Virus record (IMG/VR): IMGVR_UViG_3300034072_002211
Span: 1 to 64,000 of that record
Direction: 5' to 3' (one strand)
DNA length: 64,000 nt
The position numbers and the translations under genes are program-made. Positions 8,401 to 50,269 of this stretch are shown piece after piece (the stretch's first letter is position 1; each line of letters begins with the position of its first letter). The notes below the pieces were generated by a model. It worked only from the letters and a program-made list of their open reading frames with translations, was not told the DNA's origin and searched no databases.

Positions 8401-11400
8401 TCAGCAATGCTGTGACGCCAAACACCTATGGTATCATCGACGTGGTGGACCTCAATGTGGGTCAGGACAACCGCGCACTTGATGATCGTTGGCACTGGCG
8501 CCCAGACATGAAGGCAATTGAATGGCCACTCCGTGACTTCGGTCAGGGCGATGCTCCTCTGCCAACTGCTGGCTATGTGAACCTCGATGAAGTCCGCTTC
8601 ACAGTTGCCACCAAGGCTGAGTTTGAGGACTTCTTCGGTCAGCAAGAAGCTACCGATGAGCCCCTGGAAGCAGGCGACCGCGTTTGGGTTTACGGCATCG
8701 GTTCTGGCAAGCCAGAGGATTCGTGGATGACCTACAAGTTCCACGACACTGGTTACAACATCCTGAACACCTTTATGCCAACCTTTGAGGGTCAGGGCAC
8801 TGTGGTTCAGTTGGACCAGAACATCAAGGGTTATCAGAACGCTGACACAAACCCATGGAACACCACGTTCTATGTGGCTCAGCCTCTGCTGGCAGGTGAA
8901 AACGACGAGAATGGTAACGCAATCTCGGGCGAAATGCTGGTTCTCAAGAACCTCCAGGATGCTGACGTTAACCCACGCACTACCTACAAGCCAAGGGTGC
9001 TGGGCAAGGCAAAGCTGGCTCTCACTGGAACCAGTGGCACCACCGGCTTTGTGATGGGCTTCACTCCTGAGGCTCAGCAGATGATCCACAGGATCAAGGT
9101 TATTGTCGATGAACCATTCGCTGAGGGTTCCACGTTTGAGCTGGGATACCAGAACGACTTGGATGCTTTCGTGGCTATCCGTGAGGAAGATCAGAGGGAC
9201 ATTTATCCAACCAACTACGACAACGAAGCGGTGTTGGTTCAGACCCCTGCGACGTCCTACATGCCACCAAACGTCTCGACTGCTGACGTTGAATTGATCC
9301 GTGTGGGTCGAGTCTCGAACTTCTGTGCTCAGACGGTGGTTGAATGGTATTGGACCCGCAGCGACGGTTCTACGGCAAATGGCTCGGTGACGTTCCTGCG
9401 TCCTAGCGACGTTGTTGGTGACACTGACACGGATGATGCCTACCTGCAGACCATCCAGCTGCCAGTTACCCCTTCTGCTATGTCGGGCACATTGAGGGTT
9501 GTGACCAACGGTGTTCAGACTGACGTTCAGGTTCTGACTTTCCTCCGCACAAACCAGGCCGGCATCAACTCGGTTGATCTGACCCGTGCTGCTACCTATG
9601 AGTTCAGCCGCGCTGTCGGTATGTCCATGTATCCATGGAACACCAACACGGCTGGTGCTGATCGCGAGATGATCGCAACTCTGAACAGCCTTGGCACGCA
9701 GGGTTCTTTGCGCGTTGAGGTCGACTACTTCTACGTCAAGGGTTTTGAGCTTACCGAAGTGCTTAACGGCGCTGTGGTTCCAGCAACTTCCAACGTTGAT
9801 GGCGGCACCGCTGATGTGTTCACTTGGATTAAGACTCGCTACCCAAGCCTGAACGGCATCTCGGGTGCCCTACAGGACGGCGATCTTATTGAGGTTGACT
9901 CGGCACATGACACCCCAGGTCGTTGGGCTGTCTACAAGAAGGTCGTCAGTGAGTGGACCATCGTGCGTCGTCAGAATCGCAAGATCAACAGCGATCTCCT
10001 GACTAGCGCAGGTATCTTCAACAGCCAGGAGAACAAGCTCAAGCTGATTCTTCAGGTCTATGATCCCTACAAGGGCTTCATCCCAGGTGTCGCTGATCGC
10101 GAACTGGAATTCAAGACCTTTAACGATCCTGCGGTTTACAATGACGGTCGTATGATCTGGGGTAAGGAACAGGTTGGTAAGCTGTGGTGGGACCTCAGCG
10201 CTGTTCGCTATCTCGATTATGAAATCTATGACTCTTGGAAGTCGAATGACCACAGTGGTGTAAACTACCGCTGGAAGAACTGGGGCCGTGTTGCTCCAAA
10301 CTCCAGCGTGGATATCTACCAGTGGGTCAGGAGTCCAGTTGCTCCAAATGGCTGGTCTGACTACGTTGAGAGCAAGGCTGATCTGAAGATTGACAACAAG
10401 CCAACTGGCACTGTCGAGGAAGACGCCAAGTATGTCACCGCCACTGAGTGGAATGATGATATCCAAGCTGACGAGACAATCTATTACTTTTGGGTTAAGA
10501 ACCCAACGGTTGTTCCAACTCTGCCTTCGCGCAAGCTGTCGGCAAAGCAGGTCAGCAACATCCTCACGGATCCAGCAGCCAACGACATTCCGTTCTTTGC
10601 GGTCATTGACACCAACAAGGTGATCGTAGGTGGTATCAAGCAGTTCCTCAACGAAACTGATACGGTGCTCAAGATCAAGTGGCTCAAGGATGCTGAGATC
10701 ACCAACAACCACCACAAGCAGTGGATGATTCTGCGTGAGGAAGACGAGCGCAACACCATCAACGACACGCTATGGAACAAGATGCGTGACTCGCTGGTTG
10801 GTTGGGACTCGACTCAGAAGTATGTGCCTGATGAGAAGCTACCAGGGGCTCAGCAGATTGGTGCTATGGTTCGTCCTCGCCAGAGCTGGTTCCCAGCTGA
10901 TGCTTCGCCAAATGGCGGGCAGCGTCCAAGTCGTAGCGCCCGCGCGGCATTCGTGGATTGTCTGAATGACATCCTGAGTGAGCAGCCGTTCATCGACCAG
11001 TGGTATAACTGGAGCGAAGTGTTTGACAAGGGTGAGAACCTGCCAGCACCAGACCGCTACATCACCACTGCGCTGGATCTTGTTGATCTTCGCAACTTGC
11101 TGCCAGCGGCACGCAATATGGTTCAGCCCGGCGAATGCGTGCTCATTCAGAACACTGCAGAAGCTGCTGGTTTCTGGACCCTGTGGAAGCTGGTTGAAAT
11201 TGCTGGCCAGCGCCAGTTTATCCTCGAGGACTTCCAGAAGTGGAGGATGCAGGAGGGCGAACTGTGGAGTCTTGCTGATTGGTATGCTGATGGTTGGTCG
11301 GCTAAGAACTTCCCCAACTATCGTTTCCCAACCACTGCGGCACGCGATGCGGCAGGTAACTTGGACGTGACTCTGCTGAAGGGCACGTTGGTTCAGATTG

Positions 11401-13574
11401 ACCACAGCGATGGCGATGGCCGTTGGACTTGGGACGTCTACACCTCAACCTCGAAGTATCAGGTTGCTAAGGCGCGTTCCACGATGAAGCTCAGCGAAGC
11501 ATTCTATGATGATTCGCGCGTGGAGTTTGGTCCTCGCCAGGTGGCAGCAATCCTAGGCGCAAGTGAAGCAACCCGTATCACACCAGAGAGGATTCAGGAA
11601 CTCGCAGACATCATCAACTATCGCGATGGTTCAAGCGAGATTGAGTTCATGCTGAACACCATGAAGACTATCCTTCTGAACACCCTTCAGAAGAACAGGC
11701 TCTTCTTTGGCATGGTCAAGAGCGCGTTTAAGCAGAGCCAGGTCGTTGACTGGGCATTCAAGACGTCGTTCCTCTACCTGGGCGGCTATTCGGAGACCCT
11801 GCGTCAGAGCCCAGTTGCCTTCAAGGATCAGATTGACAACGTCATTGCCTACTTGGAAGAGGTCAAGCCATACCACGTCAAGATTCGTGAGTATGTGCGC
11901 CGACTGAGCTATGGTCCTGACCTTGCTGATCTGGCAATCACTGACTTTGACAAGCCTGTCTATCCAGACGGTCAGCGCAATCGCGTTCTCGACGTTAAGA
12001 ACGAGAACGACCGCAACATCATGGGTATCAACCGTCCTTGGAAGGATTGGTTCGAGAACTATGAGAAGGCACCAACGCCACTGACCAAGTGGGATCTGGA
12101 GTGGAACGGCGTTCGCAAGATGAACGTGACCATGAAGTTCGACCGCATTTCTTGCGGCACGGTTCGTGGTTGGGATACGGCTCCTTGGGATCCACCACTT
12201 CTCGTCTACAGCCAGATTGGCAGCAATACGCAGAGCCTCAGTCAGCTGAATGCTCTCTACAGGAATGTGAACACCCAGGGTGAGCTCAACTACTTCCGCG
12301 ATCAGACTGTGGAAACCATTGAGGAACGCAACTTCCTGGTGCGTAAGGGCATCATTACACCAGACCGTCCAGGTTCGATTGTAACTGTCCTTCAGGAAGG
12401 CTCCCACTATATGTGGACCGGCAACGAGTGGATCAAGTTCGAGGCCATTGGCTGGGATCAGGATCCCGACATGGGCACCGCAACCCGCATCGAAGATGCT
12501 TACCGTCCTCTGCCTGGTATGACCCGTAAGGATGATCCAGGTGTGATTGCTGGTTGTGAATTTGACGGCACGGTGATGACTGACACGTTCCAATATGACG
12601 CTTGGGACATCTTCGAGTGGGATTCCACTGGCTACAGCCAGGGTATCCGTGAACGTGCTGGCTTCGATCAGGAAACTGTTGATGGCAACACTACTCCTGC
12701 TGATGAGAACGATCCTGCTTACGTGGGCATCACTGGCAATGAGTTCAGCCAGCCAGCAGTGAACGGCGCACGTCCTCATGAGCTGGTTCAGATCCGTGGC
12801 GTTGAAAGCGTTGTGATCAACGTCCGCAAGGCTTCTGGCCCTTACATGAAGAACTTCATGAACGCACAGGGCAAGTGGCAGGACACTCTGGTCAGTCAGA
12901 GCGAAATGACGTTTGTTTCCTGGGATCAGAGCGCCCACTCAGTGACCCTGACGGTGCCTAGCTGGACTGAGGATGCTCAGGGCTACACGCCGCTACATGA
13001 CCCTCAGAACCCTTCTACGGGCTTCATCAAGAATGTCATGTTGAGCAAGGGTTACAGGTCTTCAAGCAATGTGGACATGAGTGCCGCAGGAACCAAGACC
13101 TTCAAGCTTCGCGATCTCAGTGATATTGATGGTATTCCAGCTGGTCTGAGGGGCGACAATGTGAACGTTGCGGTTGTGAACACCAAGGATCCAACCAAGC
13201 GCGCAATTGGTGTTCTGTCAAACAGCAAGGGTAGCGAAAAGAACTGGGACGGTCAGGTCACTATCACGTTCTCAACGGGCTTCGTGAACCTTGGTTCGGG
13301 TAAGAGCTGGAACATCATCCCAGTTGATATGTTCAACGAACCAGGCATCGTGTGGGTAGGTGACGCACGCTTCACCTACAACAGCATGACCCGCAATGGT
13401 TCGACTGTGGTCCTCGAAAATGCCTACCTGTCAGCAAGCACCTTGGCACCACTGAACATCACTGAAGATGGTGTTTCGCTGGTCAAGACTTCGCCGGTGC
13501 TGGACGGCTCTATCCAGCGCAGGATGGCAAGCAACCATTCTGACGCAGTGCCTCACGGCCCTAACAGGCCGTGA
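2475..13574 (+). CDS. Giant virion structural protein (baseplate wedge/hub, 3699 aa)
   Basis: Uninterrupted 3699-aa ORF between gp6-like gene and fibre genes; ends with YLEEVKPYHVKIRE-type segment seen in jumbo-myophage baseplate proteins. Confidence 0.7.
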   Translation: MAKKTNRNPFAFTPIVLDQDNHEKRRVIKQLPAVHQTETLQKFFGASLDHLFDPGKGKPINGYVGQKPLWYDPDQDYYLEEGTDDRTFYQLEASMVSKNVEGQLTDLLPYPDLVNQLRFQGALTNNHNRLFSQDFYTWCPPIDLDKIVNFRQYVWLPIDDVAPTSTFEDGQTDGWILADGTPAPVSGPYSGINKFVGRFAGTPAGDQVVSKTFTLNSAITTANAQFDFLKLDSWDYAGGSAGVRERLVVYINDQVAFEFTPVGISGEGGLSLGSGTISLGDITGTYNVTSPGVDTHLGASATWTDRVYRVTVNLTGTGKTFKLGFGSTTNQAIDDESLGIDNVRVWQSSKTGIELNGPTHKSISPGTTKDYFLPGYGPTGDPELKKFYDLSILTDKLIHAEVDGVSRSFTYVPGQDKITFDQRPAADAEVSISVYSDLENNAIGLPNARPEAFGGVQLSSGMRVIITLDRNSDFKKSNVYIVEGVGSSIFLIKEEDWGAGAAPDYMVMARGAANRNEWSTRNRWFHVSTLPDNMDPDYVLKQRATRPIIEFNRDLELYNYGLRRRLDVDLVVENIEDLNGYMNQFPQDVTLGGVRITTRGTTLINVAAVNPRTGTTYGDVSSIRVMVRNTVNPLLNNNVLVLVNQGGALKLILETDGENPSGEPVYGEVFNVLLGSYSGKNLHWDGTNWVESQHKVKANQAPLFELYDLNGNSLRDEGLYPNSTFKGSRLFGYRIDTTGSRIADQALGLPLIHDNKGQIQFENYLSTETYQYVVGGKFLDIVGFYFHKVGNIDAELETLSNDWYKAPTQTRQFMVDRYVSDGRTKLFNISQNAQDITVTRGRVNESKSFERTTLVEDKDFIRVGRQIMIINIQLGDVIEIRTYSSENPPADAKGHYEVPLNLQANPDNAEVDFMTKGDFYDHFSEIMKKQAGFKGAEYSDNNFRDTPKAPNLGTHIIQHSAGLLKTMLLAGNSQLDITAAIRYADAEYARFKDKFQKKILSYTFTGRLANAENYDVWINTALDELNKGKTKHFAFYLSGMAQNESNRLPTFIPPTPSFLGVYPLYAPELISQEVEGADDVWFVRGHDGSLTLGENETCARVLHALELRIFDSVTATVRLRDRPACDFQEAYSDQYRTNEYSYEEYLQVLRPSFERWSVAYRQDYKVNDLSDTTIESKINRKANPWMWNWSSVPMANGQSVPGHWRGIYEKFYGTQRPDLTPWESLGFAIKPEWWDDRYGPAPYTSENLVLWDDLEQGYIHEGERRGINAKWARPGLQQFMPVDARGRLRHPGPRDLIAYNNVTADTDLSYIPDPTYFTEENGGGWFWKVENDTYLGDEVRGRFETKAEALADYVRSWEDRHDDGVLGCGICPQVPLYSDRAADWNFGDIGPVEQTWRRSSAFAFAAATAGYLMKPAKFVELGWNTQDIGLFFKNTPNEQWLNQDTKGRPQHRELQVHGEVLEDLSLVTKVGIQQWVSDLLASKNTAINENFATRVRGLGSQLSYKVAGFTDSQTLVAVTDAFGRVPSEDITISLYRSPSIREETYSGVAIEYTGRGYEIYGYDALNPYFSVMAPAIHAGRISVGDGAKSAAVPNWNPGTYYSVDITVKYQDNFYRSNKTHTSSSFFEPEFWTQVARPQYADGSTLLWYLEGELDPVAEKIAYGTVLKTPQDVADFLNGYQRYLESRGWIFENLGEDEQEVRDWKQALKSFITWSRADVRQPGDYITLSPSSKLVRFATDQGTIQPIEQIINGLYAIVDQNGQPIDSQATRVVRNDGNITVTCDASTSGIFGLRLYVSELEHVLVFNNKTIFGDTIYSPLLNIKQPRIRLQGFKTVGWKGRIDAPGFIVTGDRLTPNFERAADDFRRFFDIESMENKKLQDRARANFGYEEKEYLNNLLLTPTNQFEFYQGMIQQKGSSTSMRRLLRSNFIRHNKGLKLFEEWAFRVGDYGGQEVTPQLDIQIRQSEFKHNPQLIQFSNAVTPNTYGIIDVVDLNVGQDNRALDDRWHWRPDMKAIEWPLRDFGQGDAPLPTAGYVNLDEVRFTVATKAEFEDFFGQQEATDEPLEAGDRVWVYGIGSGKPEDSWMTYKFHDTGYNILNTFMPTFEGQGTVVQLDQNIKGYQNADTNPWNTTFYVAQPLLAGENDENGNAISGEMLVLKNLQDADVNPRTTYKPRVLGKAKLALTGTSGTTGFVMGFTPEAQQMIHRIKVIVDEPFAEGSTFELGYQNDLDAFVAIREEDQRDIYPTNYDNEAVLVQTPATSYMPPNVSTADVELIRVGRVSNFCAQTVVEWYWTRSDGSTANGSVTFLRPSDVVGDTDTDDAYLQTIQLPVTPSAMSGTLRVVTNGVQTDVQVLTFLRTNQAGINSVDLTRAATYEFSRAVGMSMYPWNTNTAGADREMIATLNSLGTQGSLRVEVDYFYVKGFELTEVLNGAVVPATSNVDGGTADVFTWIKTRYPSLNGISGALQDGDLIEVDSAHDTPGRWAVYKKVVSEWTIVRRQNRKINSDLLTSAGIFNSQENKLKLILQVYDPYKGFIPGVADRELEFKTFNDPAVYNDGRMIWGKEQVGKLWWDLSAVRYLDYEIYDSWKSNDHSGVNYRWKNWGRVAPNSSVDIYQWVRSPVAPNGWSDYVESKADLKIDNKPTGTVEEDAKYVTATEWNDDIQADETIYYFWVKNPTVVPTLPSRKLSAKQVSNILTDPAANDIPFFAVIDTNKVIVGGIKQFLNETDTVLKIKWLKDAEITNNHHKQWMILREEDERNTINDTLWNKMRDSLVGWDSTQKYVPDEKLPGAQQIGAMVRPRQSWFPADASPNGGQRPSRSARAAFVDCLNDILSEQPFIDQWYNWSEVFDKGENLPAPDRYITTALDLVDLRNLLPAARNMVQPGECVLIQNTAEAAGFWTLWKLVEIAGQRQFILEDFQKWRMQEGELWSLADWYADGWSAKNFPNYRFPTTAARDAAGNLDVTLLKGTLVQIDHSDGDGRWTWDVYTSTSKYQVAKARSTMKLSEAFYDDSRVEFGPRQVAAILGASEATRITPERIQELADIINYRDGSSEIEFMLNTMKTILLNTLQKNRLFFGMVKSAFKQSQVVDWAFKTSFLYLGGYSETLRQSPVAFKDQIDNVIAYLEEVKPYHVKIREYVRRLSYGPDLADLAITDFDKPVYPDGQRNRVLDVKNENDRNIMGINRPWKDWFENYEKAPTPLTKWDLEWNGVRKMNVTMKFDRISCGTVRGWDTAPWDPPLLVYSQIGSNTQSLSQLNALYRNVNTQGELNYFRDQTVETIEERNFLVRKGIITPDRPGSIVTVLQEGSHYMWTGNEWIKFEAIGWDQDPDMGTATRIEDAYRPLPGMTRKDDPGVIAGCEFDGTVMTDTFQYDAWDIFEWDSTGYSQGIRERAGFDQETVDGNTTPADENDPAYVGITGNEFSQPAVNGARPHELVQIRGVESVVINVRKASGPYMKNFMNAQGKWQDTLVSQSEMTFVSWDQSAHSVTLTVPSWTEDAQGYTPLHDPQNPSTGFIKNVMLSKGYRSSSNVDMSAAGTKTFKLRDLSDIDGIPAGLRGDNVNVAVVNTKDPTKRAIGVLSNSKGSEKNWDGQVTITFSTGFVNLGSGKSWNIIPVDMFNEPGIVWVGDARFTYNSMTRNGSTVVLENAYLSASTLAPLNITEDGVSLVKTSPVLDGSIQRRMASNHSDAVPHGPNRP

Positions 13575-29951: not shown

Positions 29952-31304
29952 TTAGGACTTCCTCCATTCGGTGCCGTGAACGCCATCGGCCAGCGTGATC
30001 CCCATATCAGTGAGCTGCTGACGGATCCTATCAGCCTCCCCGTAGTTTTTGGCCCTACGTGCCTCTTGACGAGCCGCAATTAGAGCCTCGACAGCCTCCT
30101 TGTCAACACCAAGTGTCCGCCATTGGTGCGGAGTATGGTTAAAGAGACCGAGAAACTGACCAGCCTTGATCAGTCGAGCCTTTGCGGGCGCCTTGTCCTT
30201 GGCATGGTCGAGGTCATCTGCGAGTCTATGGAGGACAGACAGAGCTGTGGTGGTATTGAGGTCCTGCGATAGCGCAGAGATGATCTCTGCTGGCACATCA
30301 ACGTCCTCGGCGTAGTTGAGCTCGTCGTGCCGATAGAGGACCTCATAGAGCCCGTCGAGGGCACGATGCGCCATGTCCAGCTTGTCCATAGTAAAGTCCA
30401 TGGGCGAGCGGTAATGTGACTGCATGAAGAGGTAACGAACGCTCTCCGCGGGATACTGATCGAAAAGCTCGTTCAAGAGGATCACGTTGCCGCGGCTCTT
30501 GCTCATCTTTTCGCCATTCACTGTCAGGAGACCGTTGTGTATCCAGTAGTTGGCAAGCGGAGCACCGTTGTGGTGGCACTGGCTCTGAGCGCACTCGGCT
30601 TCATGATGCGGAAAGCGCAGATCCTGACCACCACCGTGAATGTCGATTGTTGGACGTGCGAACGTGTGGTTGATCATGGCCGAGCATTCAATATGCCAAC
30701 CCGGCCGCCCCTGGCCCCAAGGCGAGAACCAGCTTGGCTCGCCCAGCTTTGCGGGTTTCCAGAGCACGAAATCTCTGGGGTCCTTTTTCTTGGGATCGAC
30801 CTCAACCCGTGAACCCGCTTCCGTGTGGGTGTGATTTGCGAGACCGGGATGGGGATTGCTGGGAACGTGGAAGAAAACCTCCCCGTCCACCGCATAGGCA
30901 TAGCCGTGATCGATCAGTGCGATGATCATGGCAATCATACCAGGAATGTGCTGGGTGGCCCTTGGTTCCACAGTGGGCGGCAAGCAAGCCAGAGCCTCGA
31001 GATCCATATGGTAGGCCGCGAGTGCCGTGTCAGTGATCTGGCTGATCGGAACACCGCGCTCGATTGATGCTGCGATGATCTTGTCATCCACGTCCGTGAT
31101 GTTGCGGACATAGCGGACTTCGCGCTCTCCGTAGACGTGGCGCAGAAGCCGGAAGACCTGGTCGAACACGATGGCTGGGCGCGCGTTACCGATATGCGCT
31201 GGCCCATAGACCGTTGGACCACAGACATACATAGCCACCTGCTGCGAAAACGCAGGCTTGAACTCTTCCACTTGGCGGCTCTGACTGTTGTAGAATGTGA
31301 TCAT
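29952..31304 (-). CDS. cysS: Cysteinyl-tRNA synthetase
   Basis: MYVCGPTVY, HIGN, NITDVDDKII, GRPGWHIECSAM, DIHGGGQDLRFPHHEAE, KMSKS, C-terminal ADRIRQQL...I.L.D. Confidence 0.97.
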   Translation of the reverse strand: MITFYNSQSRQVEEFKPAFSQQVAMYVCGPTVYGPAHIGNARPAIVFDQVFRLLRHVYGEREVRYVRNITDVDDKIIAASIERGVPISQITDTALAAYHMDLEALACLPPTVEPRATQHIPGMIAMIIALIDHGYAYAVDGEVFFHVPSNPHPGLANHTHTEAGSRVEVDPKKKDPRDFVLWKPAKLGEPSWFSPWGQGRPGWHIECSAMINHTFARPTIDIHGGGQDLRFPHHEAECAQSQCHHNGAPLANYWIHNGLLTVNGEKMSKSRGNVILLNELFDQYPAESVRYLFMQSHYRSPMDFTMDKLDMAHRALDGLYEVLYRHDELNYAEDVDVPAEIISALSQDLNTTTALSVLHRLADDLDHAKDKAPAKARLIKAGQFLGLFNHTPHQWRTLGVDKEAVEALIAARQEARRAKNYGEADRIRQQLTDMGITLADGVHGTEWRKS

Positions 31305-34780: not shown

Positions 34781-35398
34781 TTACTTGATTGTCACTCGGA
34801 AACGGCGGATGTAATCTTCCACGTTCCCAAGGGCTGTCGCATTGTTGCTCAGGACGCGGAGATAGAGATCATCCCCATCCTTCAGCAACCCACCGGGGCC
34901 GTCTATTGCGGTGCCGGGACCCACATAAGCGACAAATACCTCATCAGCCGGAATGGCATCGCCCACATAAACAGCAATGCCGCCAATAGCAACGCCTTTC
35001 TTTTCCCAGCGACCCACGGTCTCCTGAGGGACCGACTGGAAGCCATTAGAGCCGATAGCCGTATAGGCATCCTCTAGCTTTTGGTAGACATCGCGACCCA
35101 TGAGAATCACATTGCCAGAGCCACGGCGCGAGCAAGAAGCAATAGTGTTGCCGTAGCGCATTGCCTGGATCAGGATACCAGCAAAGACCTCCGGGACCTG
35201 TTTACCATCAGTATCAACCTCATGGTCGATAACAGAACCAACCGCTAGGAGAACGTCTTCGGCTTCCTCCACGCTGGCCACCAGTTGGCAGTCAGCGGGA
35301 GTTACCTTCTCCATCTTGATAGCAATCCCACTTGCGGTCGCGCTCACGCGGACCTCGTAGGAAACATTGCCATGAATGGTGGGGAACAGCGGGCTCAC
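34781..35398 (-). CDS. Small protein resembling the C-terminal part of T4 gp23/gp24 capsid proteins
   Basis: [23 protein letters not shown] and [20 protein letters not shown]...IDG echo gp23 motifs (RRGxGNFIIxS; YIDPY...VGYKG). Confidence 0.5.
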
Positions 35399-36015
35399 GG
35401 ACGGTGCTCGATGACCTTGTCGCCGAGACCCATCGCGACTGCTTCTTCAGCCGAGAGGAAAGTGTCGAACTTCATGCTCTCGAACATCTCCTCGTAGGTC
35501 TTGCCGGCGGTGTTGTGGCGCACGTAGAGCTCAGTGAGGCGCTGGTTGATGCGCTCCGACTCTTCGAACGAACGCTTGGCATCCTCGAACTGCAGGGCCT
35601 GGACGTGGACCGAACCGCTGGTGCCACGAGTGCCCGACGACACGCGATGAATCATGGTGCGCGACTCGGGAAGCAGGTAACGCTTGCCAGCAGCACCCGC
35701 CTGGGCCAGGAACGAACCCATCGAGCAAGCCTGACCCATGACCAACGTGGCCACGTCCGGCTTGATGAAGCGCATGGTGTCATAGATTGCCAGACCGGCA
35801 GTCACCGCGCCACCCGGCGAGTTGATGTAGAGCCAGATGTCCTTGGTGGGATCCTCGGACTCGAGGAACAGAAGCTGGGCGCAAACAATCTGCGCCATGT
35901 GGTCTTCAACCTCGCCATTGAGGAACACGATGCGCTCCTTGAGCAGGCGCGAGTAGATGTCGTAAGCGCGCTCGCCGCGACCCGTCGTCTCAATGACCGT
36001 TGGAACCAGTGCCAT
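35395..36015 (-). CDS. clpP: ATP-dependent Clp protease proteolytic subunit
   Basis: [37 protein letters not shown], catalytic [21 protein letters not shown]. Confidence 0.97.
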
Positions 36016-36971: not shown

Positions 36972-38258
36972 TTACGCCGCCTGGCGCTCGTCTTCCTTGA
37001 CATAGTAGGCCGTCATGCCGAACGGCGCCACAATGCTGGTGTTGCCGTGGACGATGAAGAGGGTATCGCAATAGTCCTCTTCGCCCCACGTGCCGCACGG
37101 ATAGCCGTCCGTGAACATCACGAACTTCTTGGGCTCGATGCTGTCACCGATGCCCTCGATGTCGCCGAAGCCATAGCCGGCCGGATCGCGCATGAACTCC
37201 CAGTTGCACTCGAACATGGTGCCACCGCCGCCCTTGGGCTCGTAGTCCATGATCTCGTCGATGTTGTTGTGCGTGAACACCTTGGGGTTATAGACCTGCG
37301 TGTCGAACGTCCAGAGCGTCAGCTTGAAGTCGTCGAACGTCTCCATGATGCCCTTGGTCTCCGAGAGGAAGTCCCGCAGCATCTGGTCGGTCATGGAGCC
37401 CGAGGTGTCGATGCAGACCGCAACGTCCACCGTGTCCTTGAAGTTCTGACCGGGCAGGATGACCGAGGCACCGCCGCCCACGCCCCACGAACGCTTGCTC
37501 GGGCGGTTGAACGTGTAGTCGTCCTTGATCGAGCTCTGGATGTGCATTTCCAGCAGCGTCCGCCAGTCCATGATCGGGTTGGTGAACGCGTCGATGAGCC
37601 GCTTGACACCCGCGGGAACCTTGCCGGCGCCGACCGCCTGGGCCGCGTTGATCACAGCCGCCTTGATCTCGTTGCGGATCTTCTGCTTGTCCTCTTCGGT
37701 CAGCTGGGGAGGTCCGTCGGGGCCGCCCTGGACCGTGACCGTGATGGTCTTGCCGCCGCCCTGGCCGTCACCGTCGTCGCCGTCCGAGCCGTCCATTTCC
37801 AGGTGCTCGTCGAGCGTCATCTGGATCTTGGCCTGGTTCTGCTCCAGCAGGCGGTAGACTTCCTCGGAGGTCATCTCGTCGGTGTACTTGTCGTCGTAGA
37901 GGCCGCCCTTGGGCATGTCGCCCAGCTTCTCCTTGACGAGGGTGTAGTTGACGATGTAGTCGTTCGCCATGTTCCAGAGCTTGTGCTCGCGCGAACCCTT
38001 ACGACCGAGGTGGTCGTAGACGCAGTGCATGACTTCGTGACCGATAAGGAAGAGCAGCTCTTCCTGGGTCAGCGACTTGATGAACTCGCGATTGTAATAG
38101 AGCTTGCGGCCGTCCGTGGCAGCAGTCTTACACCACTTGGTGGCGTCGACCAGTTCCATGCGGGTCGCGAGGTTGCCGAAGAACGGCTGGTTGAAGAGAA
38201 GCCCCACTCGGGCCTGGACGATGGCCTGAACCACCGGATCCGACATATTCGCTGCCAT
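36972..38258 (-). CDS. Metallopeptidase-like + VWA domain protein (DUF2201-like)
   Basis: TAATDGRKLYYN, HEVMHCVYDH (HExxH), VCIDTSGSM (MIDAS), GGGGT, MFTDGY; tracked ATG 38288 overlaps the -10 box so start reassigned to 38258. Confidence 0.88.
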   Translation of the reverse strand: MAANMSDPVVQAIVQARVGLLFNQPFFGNLATRMELVDATKWCKTAATDGRKLYYNREFIKSLTQEELLFLIGHEVMHCVYDHLGRKGSREHKLWNMANDYIVNYTLVKEKLGDMPKGGLYDDKYTDEMTSEEVYRLLEQNQAKIQMTLDEHLEMDGSDGDDGDGQGGGKTITVTVQGGPDGPPQLTEEDKQKIRNEIKAAVINAAQAVGAGKVPAGVKRLIDAFTNPIMDWRTLLEMHIQSSIKDDYTFNRPSKRSWGVGGGASVILPGQNFKDTVDVAVCIDTSGSMTDQMLRDFLSETKGIMETFDDFKLTLWTFDTQVYNPKVFTHNNIDEIMDYEPKGGGGTMFECNWEFMRDPAGYGFGDIEGIGDSIEPKKFVMFTDGYPCGTWGEEDYCDTLFIVHGNTSIVAPFGMTAYYVKEDERQAA

Positions 38259-38286
38259 GAGATCCTTCCTTGTTGTTCTGCCCGCC

Positions 38287-38314
38287 ATTATAGCGGACTG
38301 CCCCTGCGTGTCAA
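38287..38314 (-). promoter_or_regulatory. Sigma70-type promoter
   Basis: TTGACA-N16-TATAAT. Confidence 0.8.
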
Positions 38315-38362
38315 CTATTTAGGTGACGCGGGTGGAGCGAAAACTACTCGCCGTTCGCCTGT

Positions 38363-38399
38363 AAAATGAAGGGGCGGCACGTTGCCGCACCGCCCCTTC
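38363..38399 (-). terminator. Terminator after AAA+ gene
   Basis: GAAGGGGCGG-N12-CCGCCCCTTC then ATTTT. Confidence 0.7.
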
Positions 38400-38427
38400 C
38401 CCGTTAGGCCACGGGAGCCGTAGCGCA

Positions 38428-39627
38428 TCAGGCCTGCAGGATGAGGTCCTGATACTTGTCCGAGAATTCGTCCCAGTTCTTCATGCCCGACGGGTCGAAC
38501 TGGATCCGGAAGATCGCCAGCGCCGTCCGCGAGCCCATGATGACCATTTCCGACTGGAAGTTCTTCATCATGAAGCCGAGGAAGTTGTCCACGTTGGCCG
38601 AGAACTTCTTCTTGTCCTCCGCCTTGGCGCCCTTCGCCGAGGAATTCTCGTAGCGGTCCTTCAGCTCGTAGCAGAGCGCCGTGGTCAGCGCATACATCAG
38701 GCTGATGTCCGCGCCCTTCTTCAGGTCCGTCACGCGACCCTCGAGGATGTCGCTGGCGTCCGGCAGGCTGGCCGCGTTCTTGCGATATTCCAGGAACTTG
38801 ACCGCGATGCCGTCACCGACCGAGCCGGCGATCAGGCCCATCTGGACCATTTCCGGAATGTTCGGGTCGCCGCGCAGAATGTCGGAGACCATTTCCCAGG
38901 AACGCGGGGTCGGGAAGCCGCGCGACGCGCTGGTCGCCTCGAACTGGAACAGCTCGTGCTTGAAAGCGGTCAGGTAGCCGACGACCGCCTGGTGGAAGCC
39001 GGTCTGGAGCGCGAAGGTCTGGAAGTCCTCGAAGTCCACGCGCATCTCGATGTGCGTGAAGCGATTCTGGAGCGGGGTCGGCATCTTGAAGGTCGCGCCC
39101 TTGTCCGTCTCGCGGTTACCGGCCGCCATCACGATCACGTTGTCGGGAACGTAATATTCGCCGAGCGCGCCGTCGAGAACGAGCTGGTAGGAGCCGGCCT
39201 GGACCGAAGGAGCAGCGTTGGGCAGCTCGTCCAGCAGGATGATCGCGCCGTCATATTCCTTGCCGAACTGGTCGGTCACGGTCGCGGTGCGCTTGCCTTC
39301 ATCGCGCTTCGGCAGCAGAGCCGGGATGGCCCACTCCACGAACGCCTTGCCGTCGTCCGACTTGAACGGAACCGGGATACCGCGAAGGTCGGTCGGCTCC
39401 ATCTGGGTGAGGCGAATATCGATGAGCTTGAAGTTCAGCTCGTCGGCGACCTGCTCGACGACCGACGACTTCGCAATGCCCGGCGCACCCCAGACGAAAA
39501 GACCACGGCGCTTCTTGCCGCGCTTTGCGTTCTCGAGGTTCACATTCACCATGTGCTTGATCGCGATCGCTGCTTCCGACGGCTTCAGCGTCAGCGAGTC
39601 GATACGCGAGGAACCCTTCTTGCTCAT
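38428..39627 (-). CDS. MoxR-like AAA+ ATPase
   Basis: Walker A WGAPGIAKS, Walker B ILLDELPNA, AAGNRETD, PLQNRF, FPTPRSWE; start MSKKG with AAGGAG RBS. Confidence 0.9.
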   Translation of the reverse strand: MSKKGSSRIDSLTLKPSEAAIAIKHMVNVNLENAKRGKKRRGLFVWGAPGIAKSSVVEQVADELNFKLIDIRLTQMEPTDLRGIPVPFKSDDGKAFVEWAIPALLPKRDEGKRTATVTDQFGKEYDGAIILLDELPNAAPSVQAGSYQLVLDGALGEYYVPDNVIVMAAGNRETDKGATFKMPTPLQNRFTHIEMRVDFEDFQTFALQTGFHQAVVGYLTAFKHELFQFEATSASRGFPTPRSWEMVSDILRGDPNIPEMVQMGLIAGSVGDGIAVKFLEYRKNAASLPDASDILEGRVTDLKKGADISLMYALTTALCYELKDRYENSSAKGAKAEDKKKFSANVDNFLGFMMKNFQSEMVIMGSRTALAIFRIQFDPSGMKNWDEFSDKYQDLILQA

Positions 39628-39812
39628 TTGAACTCCTTTGTTTGGCCTAACGGTCTGTAAAACCACAACCACCAATAGCACCGAGGAAAAAGGTGTCAAC
39701 CAACTTTTTCTGGGCCTTGGTGAGGAATTGCTTCCCCCGCCGCTGTCCTGTGGTTAGCGGGGGCGAATCAAACTCGCAATATAGAAAATGCACCAAAGGT
39801 AAGATTTTTGGG

Positions 39813-40208
39813 TCAGCCCTCGAAAGCTGTGAGCAGAATGTCCAAGTCACCTACTAGCTTGGCTCGCATGGCCAGGTCGGCCTCAAAGAATGTAATCTCG
39901 ATAGGGAGAAAGTTGGTCGCATACCATGGCATGGTGCATTTGCGATCCAAGTACAATATATGACGGCTAGAAAAAGTCGTCTGATCAGGGAACGTCACCA
40001 CAAACTTCTTGAAGAAGCTGCTCATGATAGCCAGACCACCCTGACTCAGCTGAAGCCCATGCTTGTGCTCGTTGCCGTTTCGGAAATTCACAAACATCAT
40101 GCGGATGACTTCTTCATCCGTCATGCCAGGGATTTCACTCGCGTGCTTTACCGGCTTGGCGTCGTTGGCCTTCCGGATTGCGGCAACAATGGGATAGTGG
40201 ATGCTCAC
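39813..40208 (-). CDS. Hypothetical protein (divergent FxxxxDAxxFKL-like C-terminus)
   Basis: ITFFEADLAMRAKLVG; ATGA coupling. Confidence 0.7.
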   Translation of the reverse strand: MSIHYPIVAAIRKANDAKPVKHASEIPGMTDEEVIRMMFVNFRNGNEHKHGLQLSQGGLAIMSSFFKKFVVTFPDQTTFSSRHILYLDRKCTMPWYATNFLPIEITFFEADLAMRAKLVGDLDILLTAFEG

Positions 40209-40492
40209 TCGGAGATAGGCTTGCCGCCTGTTAGCTCATAGACCTTGAACTTGTCGGTCTTGAAGAGCTTGTTGAGCTTTTCAGCCAGATTGAAAGCATG
40301 GCCAGGATTGCTGAAGCTGACCTTCTTATACTTGGGACCTGGATAGTTGACCAAGCTGTTGATCGATCTCAGGTTAATAGGCTTGCCCTCATAGAAGACA
40401 GCATAGATCGCCTCAGCCTCCAAGACCTGTTCAGCCTTGTAGGTCTTGGGATCTGTGTAGTCCAGGAGAATCTTAGGCTTTGGACGCGACAT
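40205..40492 (-). CDS. Conserved jumbo-phage hypothetical protein
   Basis: MSRPKPKILL...IYAVFYEGKPINLR...YPGPKYKKVSFSNPGHAFNLAEKLN. Confidence 0.75.
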   Translation of the reverse strand: MSRPKPKILLDYTDPKTYKAEQVLEAEAIYAVFYEGKPINLRSINSLVNYPGPKYKKVSFSNPGHAFNLAEKLNKLFKTDKFKVYELTGGKPISE

Positions 40493-40530
40493 TTCCAACC
40501 TCTCTATTAAGCACATGGTTATTTATCCAA

Positions 40531-40558
40531 TTGACACTTTGGAGACCAGTGCTAGATA
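40531..40558 (+). promoter_or_regulatory. Sigma70-type promoter of coaE-coaD, probably leaderless transcript
   Basis: TTGACA-N16-TAGATA-ggacag-ATG; the same TAGATAGGACAGATG 15-mer precedes cysS (31302-31316, - strand). Confidence 0.75.
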
Positions 40559-40564
40559 GGACAG

Positions 40565-41152
40565 ATGGAAGAGTTCACTCGCATCGTAGGACTGACCGGC
40601 GGCATGGGCGCAGGCAAGAGCACCCTCGTCGAAGTCATCAGGAAAGCTAGTATTCCAGTCTTTGATGTGGACGCAGAGGTCCATGCCCTCTATGAGAATC
40701 CAGAGATCGCAGACCATATTGGCTGGTTGATCGGCTTGCCAAAGCCAGTGACCCGGCAGCTGGTCAGCCAGGAGATCGTCAAGTGTCCTGATCTTTTGCC
40801 CATCGTGGAAGAAGCCATGATGCGGAATCTGGAGCAGGAACTCCGGCGGCGACTTCTCCAACCCTATGACCCATTCCTCGTCATCGACGCTCCCCTGCTC
40901 TTTGAAATGGGCTGGGACAAGCGTTGCGACATGATCATCGCCATTCAGTGCCCAAGAGAGATCCGGGAAGCACGGGTGATTCAGCGCCCCAACATGACGC
41001 AGGAGAAGATGAAGCTGCTCATGGACAAGCAGGTGGACGAAACATTCCGCCTCATGAACAGCCACTTCATCATCCACAACGACAAAAGCATCGAAGAGGC
41101 CAAGGCCAAGATGGCCGGTATCATCGAGCACCTCAAGGATTTCTACGCATGA
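40565..41152 (+). CDS. coaE: Dephospho-CoA kinase
   Basis: IVGLTGGMGAGKST, VFDVDAEVH, VIDAPLLFEMG, R..R...R, QVD...R...SHFIIHN. Confidence 0.92.
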   Translation: MEEFTRIVGLTGGMGAGKSTLVEVIRKASIPVFDVDAEVHALYENPEIADHIGWLIGLPKPVTRQLVSQEIVKCPDLLPIVEEAMMRNLEQELRRRLLQPYDPFLVIDAPLLFEMGWDKRCDMIIAIQCPREIREARVIQRPNMTQEKMKLLMDKQVDETFRLMNSHFIIHNDKSIEEAKAKMAGIIEHLKDFYA

Positions 41153-41673
41153 GCACGATCGCACTCTACGCTGGATCCTTTGATCCCCTGACCCGTGGTC
41201 ACCTGGATATTGTGAGTAAGGCGGTTCAGACTTTTGAGACCACGCATGTGGCAGTGGGTCGCAATGCCACGAAGAAGGGCTTCTTTGCGGTGGAAAAGCG
41301 ATTGGAGCTCATCAAGAGCGCGATCGAGGAATGGGAGAATCCCATCCTGGCTCAGGCTCTGGCACATGGTCGTCTTCTGATCGGAGACTATGCGGGCATT
41401 TCCATTATCAAGTATGCCCATGAGATTGGCGCTACTCACATCGTGCGCGGCTTGCGTCAGGCAGGCGACTTCAATGATGAGTTCACACTCACGGGAGCGG
41501 CGGCCCATCTGGACCACACTGTGATCTTCACGCACTTCATCGGCAAGGAGAAATACCTCCATGTTTCGAGTGGTGTTGCGCGAGAGCTCGCCAGTCTTCA
41601 AGAGGACATCAGCTGGTTGGTAACACCCAGCGTGGAAAAGGCTCTGAAGGACGAATTCGCCTCCAGAGCCTAA
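41149..41673 (+). CDS. coaD: Phosphopantetheine adenylyltransferase
   Basis: IALYAGSFDPLTRGHLDIV, VAVGRNATKKGFF, IVRGLRQAGDFNDEF, HVSSGVARELA; ATGA overlap with coaE. Confidence 0.92.
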   Translation: MSTIALYAGSFDPLTRGHLDIVSKAVQTFETTHVAVGRNATKKGFFAVEKRLELIKSAIEEWENPILAQALAHGRLLIGDYAGISIIKYAHEIGATHIVRGLRQAGDFNDEFTLTGAAAHLDHTVIFTHFIGKEKYLHVSSGVARELASLQEDISWLVTPSVEKALKDEFASRA

Positions 41674-41678
41674 ACCAA

Positions 41679-41933
41679 TCAGTAGTCATCGCGGTCGTTG
41701 AGATCTGCGCGACGTTCCTGCCAAGTCTTCTCACCAAACCACTTGCGGGGATTACCGCAACAATAGCTTGAGCAAGGATGAGGGGTGACCGCGTTCTTGC
41801 GGATTGCCACCTCTCCCTCTGGATCACTCCAGCGGGTGAATGGATCAGTAAACCAGCCGTGGGACTTCATCCAACGACGAGTGTGGGCGATTGCGCGTTC
41901 TCGTTGCGCGCGGCGCCAGGACCTATCTCGCAT
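41679..41933 (-). CDS. Small basic Cys-containing phage protein
   Basis: MRDRSWRRAQRER...TPHPCSSYCCGNPRKWFGEKT; GGAGG RBS. Confidence 0.7.
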   Translation of the reverse strand: MRDRSWRRAQRERAIAHTRRWMKSHGWFTDPFTRWSDPEGEVAIRKNAVTPHPCSSYCCGNPRKWFGEKTWQERRADLNDRDDY

Positions 41934-42020
41934 GTTAACCTCCACATGCCTAGGCCCCGGAGCCAATTCCCCGGGGTCAGGGCATGAACGGAGGATTGAA
42001 TCCCTGTGTGTTCATATCGC

Positions 42021-42896
42021 CTACTTAGTAGCAACCTCGATTTGAGTCAAGGTAAAGGGTGGATTTTCCCTCGGATAGCCCCGAGCGTTATTGGCATAAA
42101 TCACACCATCAATCTCGGTCATCTTCCGCGTGTGAGTGTGACCATAGATCCAGTAACGAATCTTGTTGTTCACATCCGCATCAAGAACTTGCGACAAGGC
42201 GGTGTTCACGTAGCTGGGAGTCAGCGCATTCCAGACCGTGTTGCCGGGCTTCCACTCCATGATGTCAGCACGTGGGCTCATATGGGTAGCAACCACAATA
42301 CTCTCAATGGCATCGTCCTCACTGGCCAGCTTTACCTGGGATGCTAAGTTGATTGCCTGCTCAGCAGCAAGGCTTTCGGGGCTCTTGAGGTCGAAGTTGG
42401 GATAGCGGGAGTCATTGGAATACTGAACCCACGCGCGCTTGGCCGTGAAGTCAGGAATACCAGCCGTCTCATAGGCCTTGAAATCATACCAGCCCACCGC
42501 TCCAAAGAATGCTACCCCATCCACGAGCAAGCCAGTGTCATGCTTGAGGTGGTAGACGTTTGGATACTTGGCGAGTAGCTGAGTGAAGAAGGCATTGCCC
42601 TGATCTACCGTCATATCATTCTGGTAGTGATCATGGTTGCCTTCCACGACGACCACATACTCATATTCTTCCGCTGCCGCAGCAACCACCTGCCAGCTGG
42701 TCATCATGGTGTTCGCAATATCACCTGCGATCACTAGAACACGGCTGTCTGGGTTCTTAAACTGGCGCCAGTCAATGTAATAGAACATGGACTTGAAAGG
42801 CTCACCGGCCCACATGCGACGCTCAGGGTCGTGAAGCTGAGTCTTGCCGAACCAAGCATCCACGTGGAGGTCAGAGCAGAAATCAATCTTCATCAT
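42021..42896 (-). CDS. Metallophosphoesterase
   Basis: SDLHVD, IAGDI, VEGNHDHY, THMSP, YGHTH. Confidence 0.9.
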   Translation of the reverse strand: MMKIDFCSDLHVDAWFGKTQLHDPERRMWAGEPFKSMFYYIDWRQFKNPDSRVLVIAGDIANTMMTSWQVVAAAAEEYEYVVVVEGNHDHYQNDMTVDQGNAFFTQLLAKYPNVYHLKHDTGLLVDGVAFFGAVGWYDFKAYETAGIPDFTAKRAWVQYSNDSRYPNFDLKSPESLAAEQAINLASQVKLASEDDAIESIVVATHMSPRADIMEWKPGNTVWNALTPSYVNTALSQVLDADVNNKIRYWIYGHTHTRKMTEIDGVIYANNARGYPRENPPFTLTQIEVATK

Positions 42897-47245: not shown

Positions 47246-47797
47246 TTACTTAACTGGAGTATTTACCCCAATCATGTTGAGGATCTGGGTTGTGCGATCA
47301 ACGTAAGGATCGTTGGTTACGCGGGTATATGCGACTTTGTGGCTGTCCAGCATATTCTGGATCAAGCAGTCGACCTCAACGGCTTCTTCTGCGGTCTGAT
47401 TGCGACCAGCGGCTTGATACGCAAAGTCCCGACCAATTAGGAAGTTGTGATTGTCGTAGCTGTTGAAGACTTCCATGGTGAAGTCATCGAACGTCTCAAA
47501 GTAGTCTGGGGTCTTGTAGATCAGACCAAGCAGGAGGGGAGAGTCGGTGATCACCCATTCAACCTGCCCCTTGAGGCGCTGAACCCTGCGATTCTGCTTG
47601 GCCAAAATGTAGAGCTGATCACTCAGCACATTGGTGCGCTTTTCCCACGTCATATCCTTGGCATACTCGGTGACGAGTTCTACCTCAATTTGACGCTTCT
47701 TCATTTCAAAGAAGAGACCAGCGGCAGTTGTGGACTTGCCCGCTCCTGGACCTCCGAAAACGTTCAGAACTTTTAGTTTTCCGTGTTCTTTGACCAT
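47246..47797 (-). CDS. P-loop NTPase / nucleotide kinase-like (AAA_28/NadR-type)
   Basis: GGPGAGKSTTA, VTEYAKD, ITDSPLLL, GRNQ. Confidence 0.8.
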   Translation of the reverse strand: MVKEHGKLKVLNVFGGPGAGKSTTAAGLFFEMKKRQIEVELVTEYAKDMTWEKRTNVLSDQLYILAKQNRRVQRLKGQVEWVITDSPLLLGLIYKTPDYFETFDDFTMEVFNSYDNHNFLIGRDFAYQAAGRNQTAEEAVEVDCLIQNMLDSHKVAYTRVTNDPYVDRTTQILNMIGVNTPVK

Positions 47798-49271: not shown

Positions 49272-49766
49272 TTACAGTCCCTCAAACAGACCAGAACTTA
49301 CAAAGCTATAAGTTTGATCTTTCTTGGTGATCCATGTAGTCGCAACTGGAGCAGGCTTAGCGGCTTCACGTATCATCACTTCAATTGCTTTGGCCGGCGT
49401 GCAGTTAAACCATTCGCCGTGTCCCGTCTGCTTAGTGGTATCATGTCGCGAAACATACCCTTCTTTTCGAAGAGCAGAATGAACCCTGGCTTCTAGCTCT
49501 AAAGCTTCACGTTTGGCCGGCGAATCAGTCTTCGGCTGATATCCTTCACCAAGATCTTTTTCAAACCTGTGCGTGTATGAAAAGTCTAGTTTGCGAATAT
49601 TGCCCTGTTGAAGAGCCCTTCTGCGCTGATGGTATGGGTCTGCGTGGCAGCTTTCTGCCATTACACCAACCTTGCACCAGTTAGTAGCAGTCGGGAATCC
49701 TTCTTCCTCTACTTCATGTGCCACGTAAACATAAGCCACTCTTGGATCAGTTTGCGACTTAGCCAT
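49272..49766 (-). CDS. GIY-YIG-like (T5orf172/MUG113) nuclease
   Basis: AYVYV, CKVGV, LQQGN, LEARVH, GEWF. Confidence 0.7.
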   Translation of the reverse strand: MAKSQTDPRVAYVYVAHEVEEEGFPTATNWCKVGVMAESCHADPYHQRRRALQQGNIRKLDFSYTHRFEKDLGEGYQPKTDSPAKREALELEARVHSALRKEGYVSRHDTTKQTGHGEWFNCTPAKAIEVMIREAAKPAPVATTWITKKDQTYSFVSSGLFEGL

Positions 49767-50269
49767 TATGCTTTCCACCACTCCTCGTAGGGAAAGATCA
49801 CCCAACGCTCGTCTTCCGCGCGGGAGATCTCTCGACCCACATAATCTGCTTCAAAAACGTCTTGGCTGATGTTGTTCCACAACACCGCAACCTTCAGACG
49901 GGCTTCCCAACCCTGGTATGGATCGTTCCAACCCTTGGGCATCTGAGAAGTAATCTCATCCACCACTTTACGCAGGGTCTCTCCAGAATCGCAAATATCA
50001 TCAACCAGAAGGATCGAATTTCCTTCCTTGATCTTGCGCGCAGCGTCACTGATCTCTGAGACATGACTGACCATGTTGTCCCGGAGGCTGTAGTTGATAG
50101 TCTGGAGTGGCTTGCCTAGGTAATGGCTCAGCATGGTCGCCGGAACCAGTCCACCGCGCGCGATGCCAACAACCACGTCGGGCTTGAAATCGTCCTTGCC
50201 CATCTGACGGATGATCTCCTGGAGATCGCCCCGCATCTGGTCGTTGGTGTAGATGATCTTCTCAGGCAT
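49766..50269 (-). CDS. Purine phosphoribosyltransferase (Gpt-like)
   Basis: VVGIARGGLVPA, PRPP motif ILLVDDICDSGETL, WVIFPYE. Confidence 0.9.
   Translation of the reverse strand: MPEKIIYTNDQMRGDLQEIIRQMGKDDFKPDVVVGIARGGLVPATMLSHYLGKPLQTINYSLRDNMVSHVSEISDAARKIKEGNSILLVDDICDSGETLRKVVDEITSQMPKGWNDPYQGWEARLKVAVLWNNISQDVFEADYVGREISRAEDERWVIFPYEEWWKA

Follow-up and report, generated by a model that had tools for sequence, protein, structure and literature searches.

Why would a very large phage encode the last two steps of coenzyme A (CoA) synthesis, when we find no earlier step of that pathway beside them? The question is raised by coaE-coaD, a two-gene operon in a stretch of 64,000 nucleotides (the window in what follows), which is the first 64 kb of the IMG/VR virus record IMGVR_UViG_3300034072_002211 (G000; 277,444 bp, completeness estimate 60%). 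Our answer has two parts of unequal certainty. Judged by sequence, coaE encodes a dephospho-CoA kinase (DPCK) and coaD a phosphopantetheine adenylyltransferase (PPAT) of a separate, phage-associated subfamily, and these identities are firmer than anything we can say about purpose. Regarding purpose, the balance in our opinion tilts slightly in favour of an auxiliary metabolic operon, which would raise or maintain the CoA pool by bypassing the PPAT of the host.

The identity of the first gene is easily illustrated. The product of coaE (40565-41152, plus strand, 195 amino acids) matches PF01121 with an E-value of 2.5e-26 and 92.9 bits (cut-off 27) and TIGR00152 with 86.1 bits, above the equivalog cut-off of 65.55; it also matches 13 distinct DPCK sequences in the PDB, the best at E 3.4e-16. 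The P-loop GxTGGxGxGKS/T, the DxD after strand 2, the PLLFE motif and the lid arginines, all of which have roles known from DPCK structures, are present. Across 24 relatives, residues G9, T11, G12, G15, G17, K18, S19, T20, D36, P110, L112, E114, R137 and R141 do not vary at all, and 90% or more keep D34 and F113. Nonsynonymous divergence (pN) among relatives is 0.21-0.35 against a synonymous divergence (pS) of 0.71-0.82. On this evidence CoaE is a dephospho-CoA kinase, predicted to phosphorylate the 3'-OH of dephospho-CoA.

The product of coaD (41149-41673, plus strand, 174 amino acids) scores 126.4 bits against TIGR01510, above the equivalog cut-off of 103.3, and matches 34 distinct PPAT sequences in the PDB (best E 1.7e-28). 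Residues S10, F11, D12, P13, T15, G17, H18, K42, R100, R103, S140, S141 and E146 are common to its subfamily and to canonical CoaD, so that the motifs (T/S)FDPxTxGH, Lys42, RGLR, SS(S) and the Glu are all kept; these conserved residues map onto the ATP contacts of the PPAT of M. abscessus (PMC9197168). Purifying selection is again evident among relatives, with pN of 0.15-0.21 versus pS of 0.68-0.85. The original prediction, made from the letters of the window, had allowed that the CoaD-like protein might prove to be a nicotinamide mononucleotide (NMN) adenylyltransferase or some other adenylyltransferase. The first is ruled out: models for NMN and nicotinate mononucleotide adenylyltransferases give 15-33 bits against cut-offs of 112-449, the best being 32.6 against 112. 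The second stands in part, by way of the non-canonical subfamily and altered pocket of the protein.

That CoaD belongs to a separate subfamily is clear from its phylogeny. A fully supported long branch splits 20 canonical alphaproteobacterial CoaDs from a phage-type clade, which unites the megaphage proteins with second copies from cellular genomes and with the CoaDs of Caulobacter and Brevundimonas jumbo phages. The subfamily has an 11-residue insert, carries DFNDE where canonical CoaD has DFEYE, and departs from canonical CoaD in 29 of the 62 columns that are conserved there. The cellular homologues (53-58% identity, from Phenylobacterium and Devosia) are not housekeeping enzymes. Their gene neighbours vary and include TetR, HxlR, MFS and short-chain dehydrogenase (SDR) genes. 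Such homologues are also rare: a phage-type match above 40% identity was found in one of 301 sampled Alphaproteobacteria, Phenylobacterium terrae, which was itself the centre of the search (the tally includes the unpublished genome G046, with a canonical-type match only). The second CoaD of P. terrae (L107 8001-8528) is flanked by genes for an MFS transporter and for an HI0933-like flavoprotein, the gene ends touching or overlapping, and may be part of an operon.

In the phage operon, the stop codon of coaE and the start codon of coaD share an ATGA overlap at 41149-41152 (plus strand), an arrangement typical of translational coupling, and AAGGA is found 9 nt upstream of the coaD ATG. The ATGA junction recurs in relatives L008, L012 and L013, while the locus L114 has a 14-nt overlap; altogether, coupling of coaE and coaD is found in at least 12 phage lineages. 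All flanking genes are on the minus strand. Thus the description of the pair as coaE and coaD, organised in a coupled operon opposite to its neighbours, holds in every respect. An E. coli-consensus terminator scan found no terminator for the operon. The long open reading frames (ORFs) antisense to coaE and coaD are best read as shadow frames, because the family matches and the selection pattern belong to the plus strand.

The claim that the operon has a strong promoter of its own is more complicated. The region in question (40520-40564, plus strand) consists of a TATTTATCC block at 40520-40528, a -35 element TTGACA at 40531-40536, a 16-nt spacer, an extended -10 element with TG at 40550-40551 and TAGATA at 40553-40558, and then 6 nt before the coaE ATG at 40565. 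This promoter escapes a scan with the E. coli consensus, because its -10 element lacks the final T. We nevertheless consider it real, for two reasons. Nine syntenic relatives retain the block TATTTATCC..TTGAC(A)-N-TG(C/T)TA(G/A) ahead of their first plus-strand gene, despite synonymous sites that are saturated (pS 0.68-0.85). Further, the motif class is enriched genome-wide: the 277-kb record holds 33 copies of TTGAC-N12-15-TG[CT]TA[GA], versus 1.3 expected (maximum 3) in shuffled sequence. Hence the operon does have its own conserved promoter, although not one that the E. coli consensus would identify.

The other copies of the motif tell something about the use of this promoter. The minus strand has 31 of the 33 copies, at 69 kb and across 142-268 kb (192524-192548 and 203315-203339 are examples), and the plus strand has two, one in the window at 40531-40555 and one at 134980; the spacer is often CACCAGTTCTG. 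Two spacing classes can be distinguished. One has its start codon 27-34 nt downstream, following a GGAGATCG-like ribosome-binding site. The other has it 9-10 nt downstream, and comprises seven cases including coaE (six ATG and one TTG). Given that the -10 element of coaE ends 6 nt before the ATG, transcription is predicted to start on the A of that codon and the mRNA to be leaderless. The 8-9-nt spacing is kept in six of nine loci with no conservation of the spacer sequence itself, and three relatives with coaD only have a leader longer by about 20 nt, with GGAGAG. The layout resembles the housekeeping promoter consensus of alphaproteobacteria, and Caulobacter has many leaderless mRNAs. The 33-copy motif probably marks one temporal class of phage genes. 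coaE-coaD is wired into this phage-wide, sigma-70-like promoter class, which is probably read by host RNA polymerase at what we would expect to be an early stage of infection.

What about the rest of the pathway? The original prediction had noted that coaA and coaBC are not in the window, and the same is true on a larger scale. Models for DFP and Flavoprotein (CoaBC), for type I and type III pantothenate kinases and for acyl carrier protein (ACP) have no match in the 277-kb record; DFP, type III pantothenate kinase and ACP phosphodiesterase (AcpH) have none in the four near-complete relatives (G001-G004, 90-100% complete, 416-465 kb). Since no upstream step was found, the phage would depend on 4'-phosphopantetheine of the host. 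A source of 4'-phosphopantetheine or a consumer of CoA encoded by the phage itself was considered and rejected, as neither AcpH nor ACP was found. The two Nudix proteins of the phage give weak generic matches and are not of the CoA-pyrophosphatase type, and a single GNAT gene elsewhere in the genome has no link to the operon.

Genes of another cofactor are, on the other hand, present in this group. A NAMPT-like gene of about 440 amino acids is present in each of the four near-complete relatives (G001 30370-31080; G002 38742-39449; G003 148100-148810; G004 324516-325226), and G000 encodes at 203346-205070 (minus strand) a 574-residue protein with an NMN adenylyltransferase (NMNAT)-like domain that scores below cut-off. 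Together they may constitute an NAD+ pathway similar to NAD+ reconstitution pathway 2 (NARP2), in which case the NAMPT gene of G000 probably lies in the 40% of the genome that is missing from the record. The NAMPT-like gene in relatives suggests to us that late-step cofactor supply is a theme of the phage group. Two further genes are found a few kb from the operon: an AAA_28 kinase-like gene, of the NadR kinase domain family, at 47246-47797 (minus strand) and a phosphoribosyltransferase of the purine/pyrimidine type at 49766-50269 (minus strand).

The distribution of the two genes is informative, since they do not behave alike. IMG/VR contains nine loci from relatives with genomes of 416-465 kb, whose CoaDs are 66-82% identical to that of the window, and a tenth locus of the clade (L136) came from a later CoaE scan of the same database. 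coaD is present in all syntenic relatives (10 of 10; 11 of 11 loci when the window is counted). coaE is adjacent to it in six of 11 loci (the window, L008, L012, L013, L136 and L114) and absent from the slot in five (L009, L010, L011, L014 and L016), the status being scored only where the left side of the locus was readable. L114 is much more distant than the others, with a CoaD 57% identical, and has both genes. Neither did a whole-genome family search find CoaE in G001 (100% complete) or G002 (90% complete). Mapped on the CoaD tree, in which many forks are weakly supported, 12 of 17 scored lineages have coaE and five do not, which takes at least three changes of state; as the deepest branch has coaE, repeated loss is the simplest account.

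Outside of this clade, the Caulobacter and Brevundimonas jumbo phages (Dolichocephalovirinae) have coaD alone: protein searches of their genomes find no coaE, and the idea that a divergent kinase hides beside their coaD was dropped, the adjacent ORFs having no kinase family match. Both genes are present but separated in a 359-kb virus (G307), with a phage-type CoaD at 95.5 kb and CoaE 60 kb away, and both are present and unlinked in the 462-kb uncultured phage LR756500.1. We did not count Microcystis phage MaAM05 (PhiMa05; L103, MW495066.1 32379-40843) as a phage with coaD, because there the gene is beside secE-nusG-rplK-rplA and tRNA-Trp, which suggests bacterial DNA in the record; many other database matches labelled as phage come from bacterial records or from short contigs that lack annotation. 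Of the two proteins, PHROGs v4 covers CoaD, by a family that has no annotation, and not CoaE. In our reading, coaD is the constant, selected core of this system and coaE an optional addition.

Where both are present, the two genes diverge in step. In 19 phages with both, pairwise identities of CoaE and CoaD correlate (r 0.66, Mantel p about 0.0005), with CoaE evolving faster (mean identity 51% versus 72% for CoaD). The megaphage CoaEs form a well-supported clade, and a single origin of the coaE-coaD pair is likely from these sequences; we say no more than likely, because the tree does not resolve the position of the distant L114 CoaE relative to that clade. Compared with bacterial enzymes, the two genes differ in their history. 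The phage proteins belong to the same TIGR01510 and TIGR00152 families and have the same catalytic motifs as bacterial CoaD and CoaE, whereas the phage CoaD falls into a different subfamily, marked by an insert and a changed pocket, and the phage CoaE shares no more than 35% identity with the cellular CoaEs found (the nearest, at 27-35%, are from Rhodospirillaceae, Asaia and Solirubrobacterales). The cellular genes are also not adjacent: across 80 cellular loci with coaE, coaD never comes within 3 kb. Hence the operon was put together in phages.

What would such an operon do for the phage? Transcription would start from a phage promoter of the sigma-70-like class at or next to the coaE ATG, producing a leaderless mRNA, and coaD would be translated through coupling at the ATGA overlap. 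CoaD would adenylylate 4'-phosphopantetheine of the host to dephospho-CoA, and CoaE would phosphorylate the latter to CoA. In this manner the PPAT of the host, flux-limiting and inhibited by CoA, would be bypassed, and the pool of CoA and acyl-CoA would be raised or kept up during infection; the kinase would be dispensable wherever that of the host suffices. It has been reported that PPAT is rate-limiting, that 4'-phosphopantetheine accumulates in E. coli and that CoA feedback-inhibits PPAT (PMC9197168). Because PPAT is thus the step of flux control and is inhibited by CoA, a metabolic module bypassing the host PPAT is in our opinion the best reading, and it matches the observed pattern, in which PPAT is found always, the kinase often and the upstream steps never. 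It is also close to what the original prediction had offered as an alternative, namely that the pair boosts acyl-CoA supply; an always-kept PPAT fits this well. The window region is syntenic in virus genomes of 416-465 kb and in the isolate Sinorhizobium phage Phosso, so we are dealing with a genuine phage genome and, given the purifying selection, with what may properly be called auxiliary metabolic genes (AMGs).

Several points weigh against this reading and should be stated. Boosting the CoA pool and rebuilding CoA after its cleavage predict an identical gene content. CoaD is not orthologous to the housekeeping CoaD of bacteria, but forms a separate clade with full support, and P. terrae has a canonical CoaD (198 bits) as well as a phage-type one (138 bits) at different genome positions. 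The pantetheine pocket is altered. Its canonical residues in the M. abscessus PPAT are Pro7, Leu73, Met101, Asn105 and Glu132 (PMC9197168). In the phage-type protein the Glu, which binds the pantetheine amide, is kept and the change of Met to Leu is conservative, but Pro has become Ala, Leu-Leu has become Ser-Ile (Leu to Ser) and Asn has become Ala. That Asn is 100% conserved in 20 canonical CoaD sequences, in which the replaced pocket positions are invariant or nearly so. With these residues lost, the substrate or the regulation of CoaD may differ. Finally, the identity of the host is deduced solely from Phosso, a distant isolate, and from the closest homologues of CoaD.

If the pocket is taken at face value, the phage-type CoaD would act on another phosphorylated acceptor, or would be a deregulated, CoA-insensitive isozyme with a distinct role, such as its bacterial paralogues may have too. 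We regard this as unlikely, though it deserves to be taken seriously. The long and fully supported branch, the 29 altered columns of 62 with the pocket Asn, Pro and Leu-Leu among them, the change of DFEYE to DFNDE, the rarity of the type (one of 301 Alphaproteobacteria), its coexistence with canonical CoaD in P. terrae and the varied contexts of the bacterial copies all speak for it. Yet the protein passes the PPAT equivalog cut-off and retains every ATP-binding and catalytic residue together with the amide-binding Glu, and in at least 12 phage lineages it is coupled to a kinase whose only known substrate is the product of PPAT. A related possibility is that dephospho-CoA itself is the purpose, as the initiating nucleotide of RNA caps or as the precursor of a prosthetic group. 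It is coaD alone that is conserved throughout the megaphage clade and Dolichocephalovirinae, the direct product of the enzyme is dephospho-CoA, and dephospho-CoA caps are reportedly documented on bacterial RNA. But 12 of 17 lineages carry coaE, which consumes dephospho-CoA and stands first in the operon, and the kinase of the host would use up the product too; we identified no partner that would remove or read such a cap, and the two Nudix proteins give weak generic matches. To us this makes it quite improbable. Finally, both genes might be passengers, acquired not long ago and serving no selected function, with which the variability of the slot would agree. We give this hardly any credence: both genes are intact in relatives whose synonymous sites are saturated, with pN/pS of about 0.2-0.45, promoter and coupling are conserved, and CoaE and CoaD alike form monophyletic megaphage clades.

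The original prediction had put its emphasis elsewhere, on counter-defence. According to this idea, a host effector cleaves the pyrophosphate of CoA into 4'-phosphopantetheine and 3',5'-ADP, and PPAT and DPCK rebuild the cofactor by analogy with NARP1 and NARP2. The attraction is obvious, as both enzymes are exactly those that such a rebuild requires. Genes placed as these are, opposite to their neighbours in strand, under a promoter of their own and in a slot of variable content, are typically accessory or anti-defence genes; the same slot holds a different accessory gene in Phosso; about 30 early-gene-like units of small ORFs are under the same promoter class; and the NAMPT-like gene of the phage group represents half of NARP2 (bioRxiv 10.1101/2024.02.11.579819). 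Nevertheless, coaE and coaD are not a fixed pair. The kinase is dispensable, being absent from five of 11 loci and from two genomes that are 90-100% complete, and its frequent loss goes unexplained if the pair is there for reconstitution; with at least three changes of state on the CoaD tree, coaE and coaD are not inherited as a unit in the way of a NARP-like system, and other phages have coaD alone. The chemistry is classical, with no phage-specific reaction like that of NARP1, and neither protein meaningfully matches a PADLOC model. No CoA-depleting defence appeared in our full-text literature searches, in the NARP papers or in a 2026 counter-defence review, which does not mean that none exists in nature; nor did our literature search turn up a paper that treats CoA synthesis by phages as a means of counter-defence. 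We therefore consider counter-defence rather unlikely. One may still speculate, as a long shot, that a PPAT lineage peculiar to jumbo phages of Alphaproteobacteria, with a remodelled and perhaps CoA-insensitive pocket and an optional kinase is the CoA counterpart of NARP, directed against a CoA-cleaving effector yet to be discovered.

Comparison with known systems helps to place the metabolic reading. NARP2 (NadV-NatV, Nampt plus Nmnat, for instance in Vibrio phage KVP40) is likewise a two-enzyme phage module built of host-type enzymes for the late steps of an adenine-containing cofactor. One of its enzymes is, as here, a Rossmann-fold adenylyltransferase of the PPAT superfamily, and relatives of our phage carry a NAMPT-like gene. 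The differences are that the cofactor here is CoA and not NAD+, that NAD+-depleting defence is well documented while a CoA-depleting one was not found in the literature, and that coaE and coaD are not always together. In animals, CoA synthase (COASY) is a fusion of PPAT and DPCK with PPAT first. The phage operon resembles it in that the last two steps of CoA synthesis are physically linked and made together, although in the phage they are two proteins, with the kinase gene first and translational coupling as the link. The closest viral parallel is the coaD of Dolichocephalovirinae, annotated as PPAT: it is of the same phage-type clade with 42-44% identity, its hosts are alphaproteobacteria, and no upstream CoA genes were noted nearby. 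It differs in having no coaE and in lying within a co-directional gene block instead of a divergent cassette. Both genes have also been listed as abundant viral AMGs in snow viromes, their purpose being "not entirely known" (PMC11097641). These are the same two genes from viral contigs, but the listing is at the level of annotation, without operon structure, phylogeny or distribution. Therefore, that phages have auxiliary genes for late cofactor steps, viral coaD and coaE included, was already known; the coupled and, by prediction, leaderless operon, the phage-associated PPAT subfamily and the natural variants with and without the kinase are new.

Why does it matter? Phage genes for late steps of NAD+ synthesis were long read as metabolic helpers and were then shown to defeat NAD+-depleting immunity, and CoA raises the same question. 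The cassette is a testable one, with variants that have coaD only, coaE and coaD, or neither in otherwise syntenic genomes, one of which belongs to a cultured Sinorhizobium phage. The constancy of the phage-subfamily PPAT points to the control step at PPAT and to 4'-phosphopantetheine as the host metabolite that is drawn on. Should the role be only metabolic, the operon would be one more auxiliary gene set, yet a rare one, considering that PHROGs v4 has no CoaE family.

The surroundings of the operon are stable and the slot itself is not. The flanking genes, all on the minus strand (38428-39699, 39813-40208, 40205-40516, 41679-41966 and 42021-42896), encode an AAA/MoxR-like ATPase, two small uncharacterised proteins, a 95-residue protein likewise unassigned in function and a metallophosphoesterase; in relatives they are 56-96% identical and their order is unchanged. 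The left edge of the variable slot is the 103-codon gene at 40205-40516 (minus strand), 81-96% identical in relatives and Phosso and with no significant Pfam or PHROG match. The right edge is the 95-codon gene at 41679-41966 (minus strand, phrog_4499), which converges on coaD. Phosso, cultured and 469 kb in size, has these flanks in common (AAA ATPase 66% and upstream gene 81% identical) but no coaD; its slot has instead a glutaredoxin gene on the minus strand, from which we conclude that the slot is a site of accessory-gene exchange. Other variations are seen nearby. A small hydrophobic ORF of about 55-75 amino acids follows coaD on the plus strand in L009 (6535-6703), L010-L014 and L016, and is not found in the window or L008. 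In L013 an inserted minus-strand gene (about 4814-5370) separates the coaE promoter from the upstream flank gene; to judge by its N-terminal motif only, it encodes a GIY-YIG-like homing endonuclease. The MoxR-like AAA ATPase forms a pair with a DUF2201 metallopeptidase/VWA protein (36972-39699, minus strand), and this pair is conserved in all relatives and in Phosso.

Concerning the phage, a 468,011-bp contig in the protein collection carries the same proteins as the window record, and the genome is that of a soil-type megaphage of about 468 kb. IMG/VR classes G000 as a 60% complete "provirus", yet its proteins are found on the 468-kb contig, and two of the relatives' genomes have terminal repeats and are 100% complete; the label is probably an artefact from the trimming of a huge phage. 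The host, by analogy with Phosso and the nearest CoaD homologues, is probably an alphaproteobacterium.

The window has other features of some interest. A single open frame of 3,699 amino acids occupies 2475-13574 (plus strand), preceded by an open frame of at least 824 amino acids that runs off the window start. At 29952-31304 (minus strand) there is a full-length cysteinyl-tRNA synthetase (PF01406, E 4e-108) with its anticodon-binding domain. Two ClpP-family protease genes are present, one in the window at 35395-36015 and one at 99049-99738 of the record, both on the minus strand; the former adjoins a 205-codon ORF (34781-35398) with a partial match to the T4 major capsid protein Gp23.

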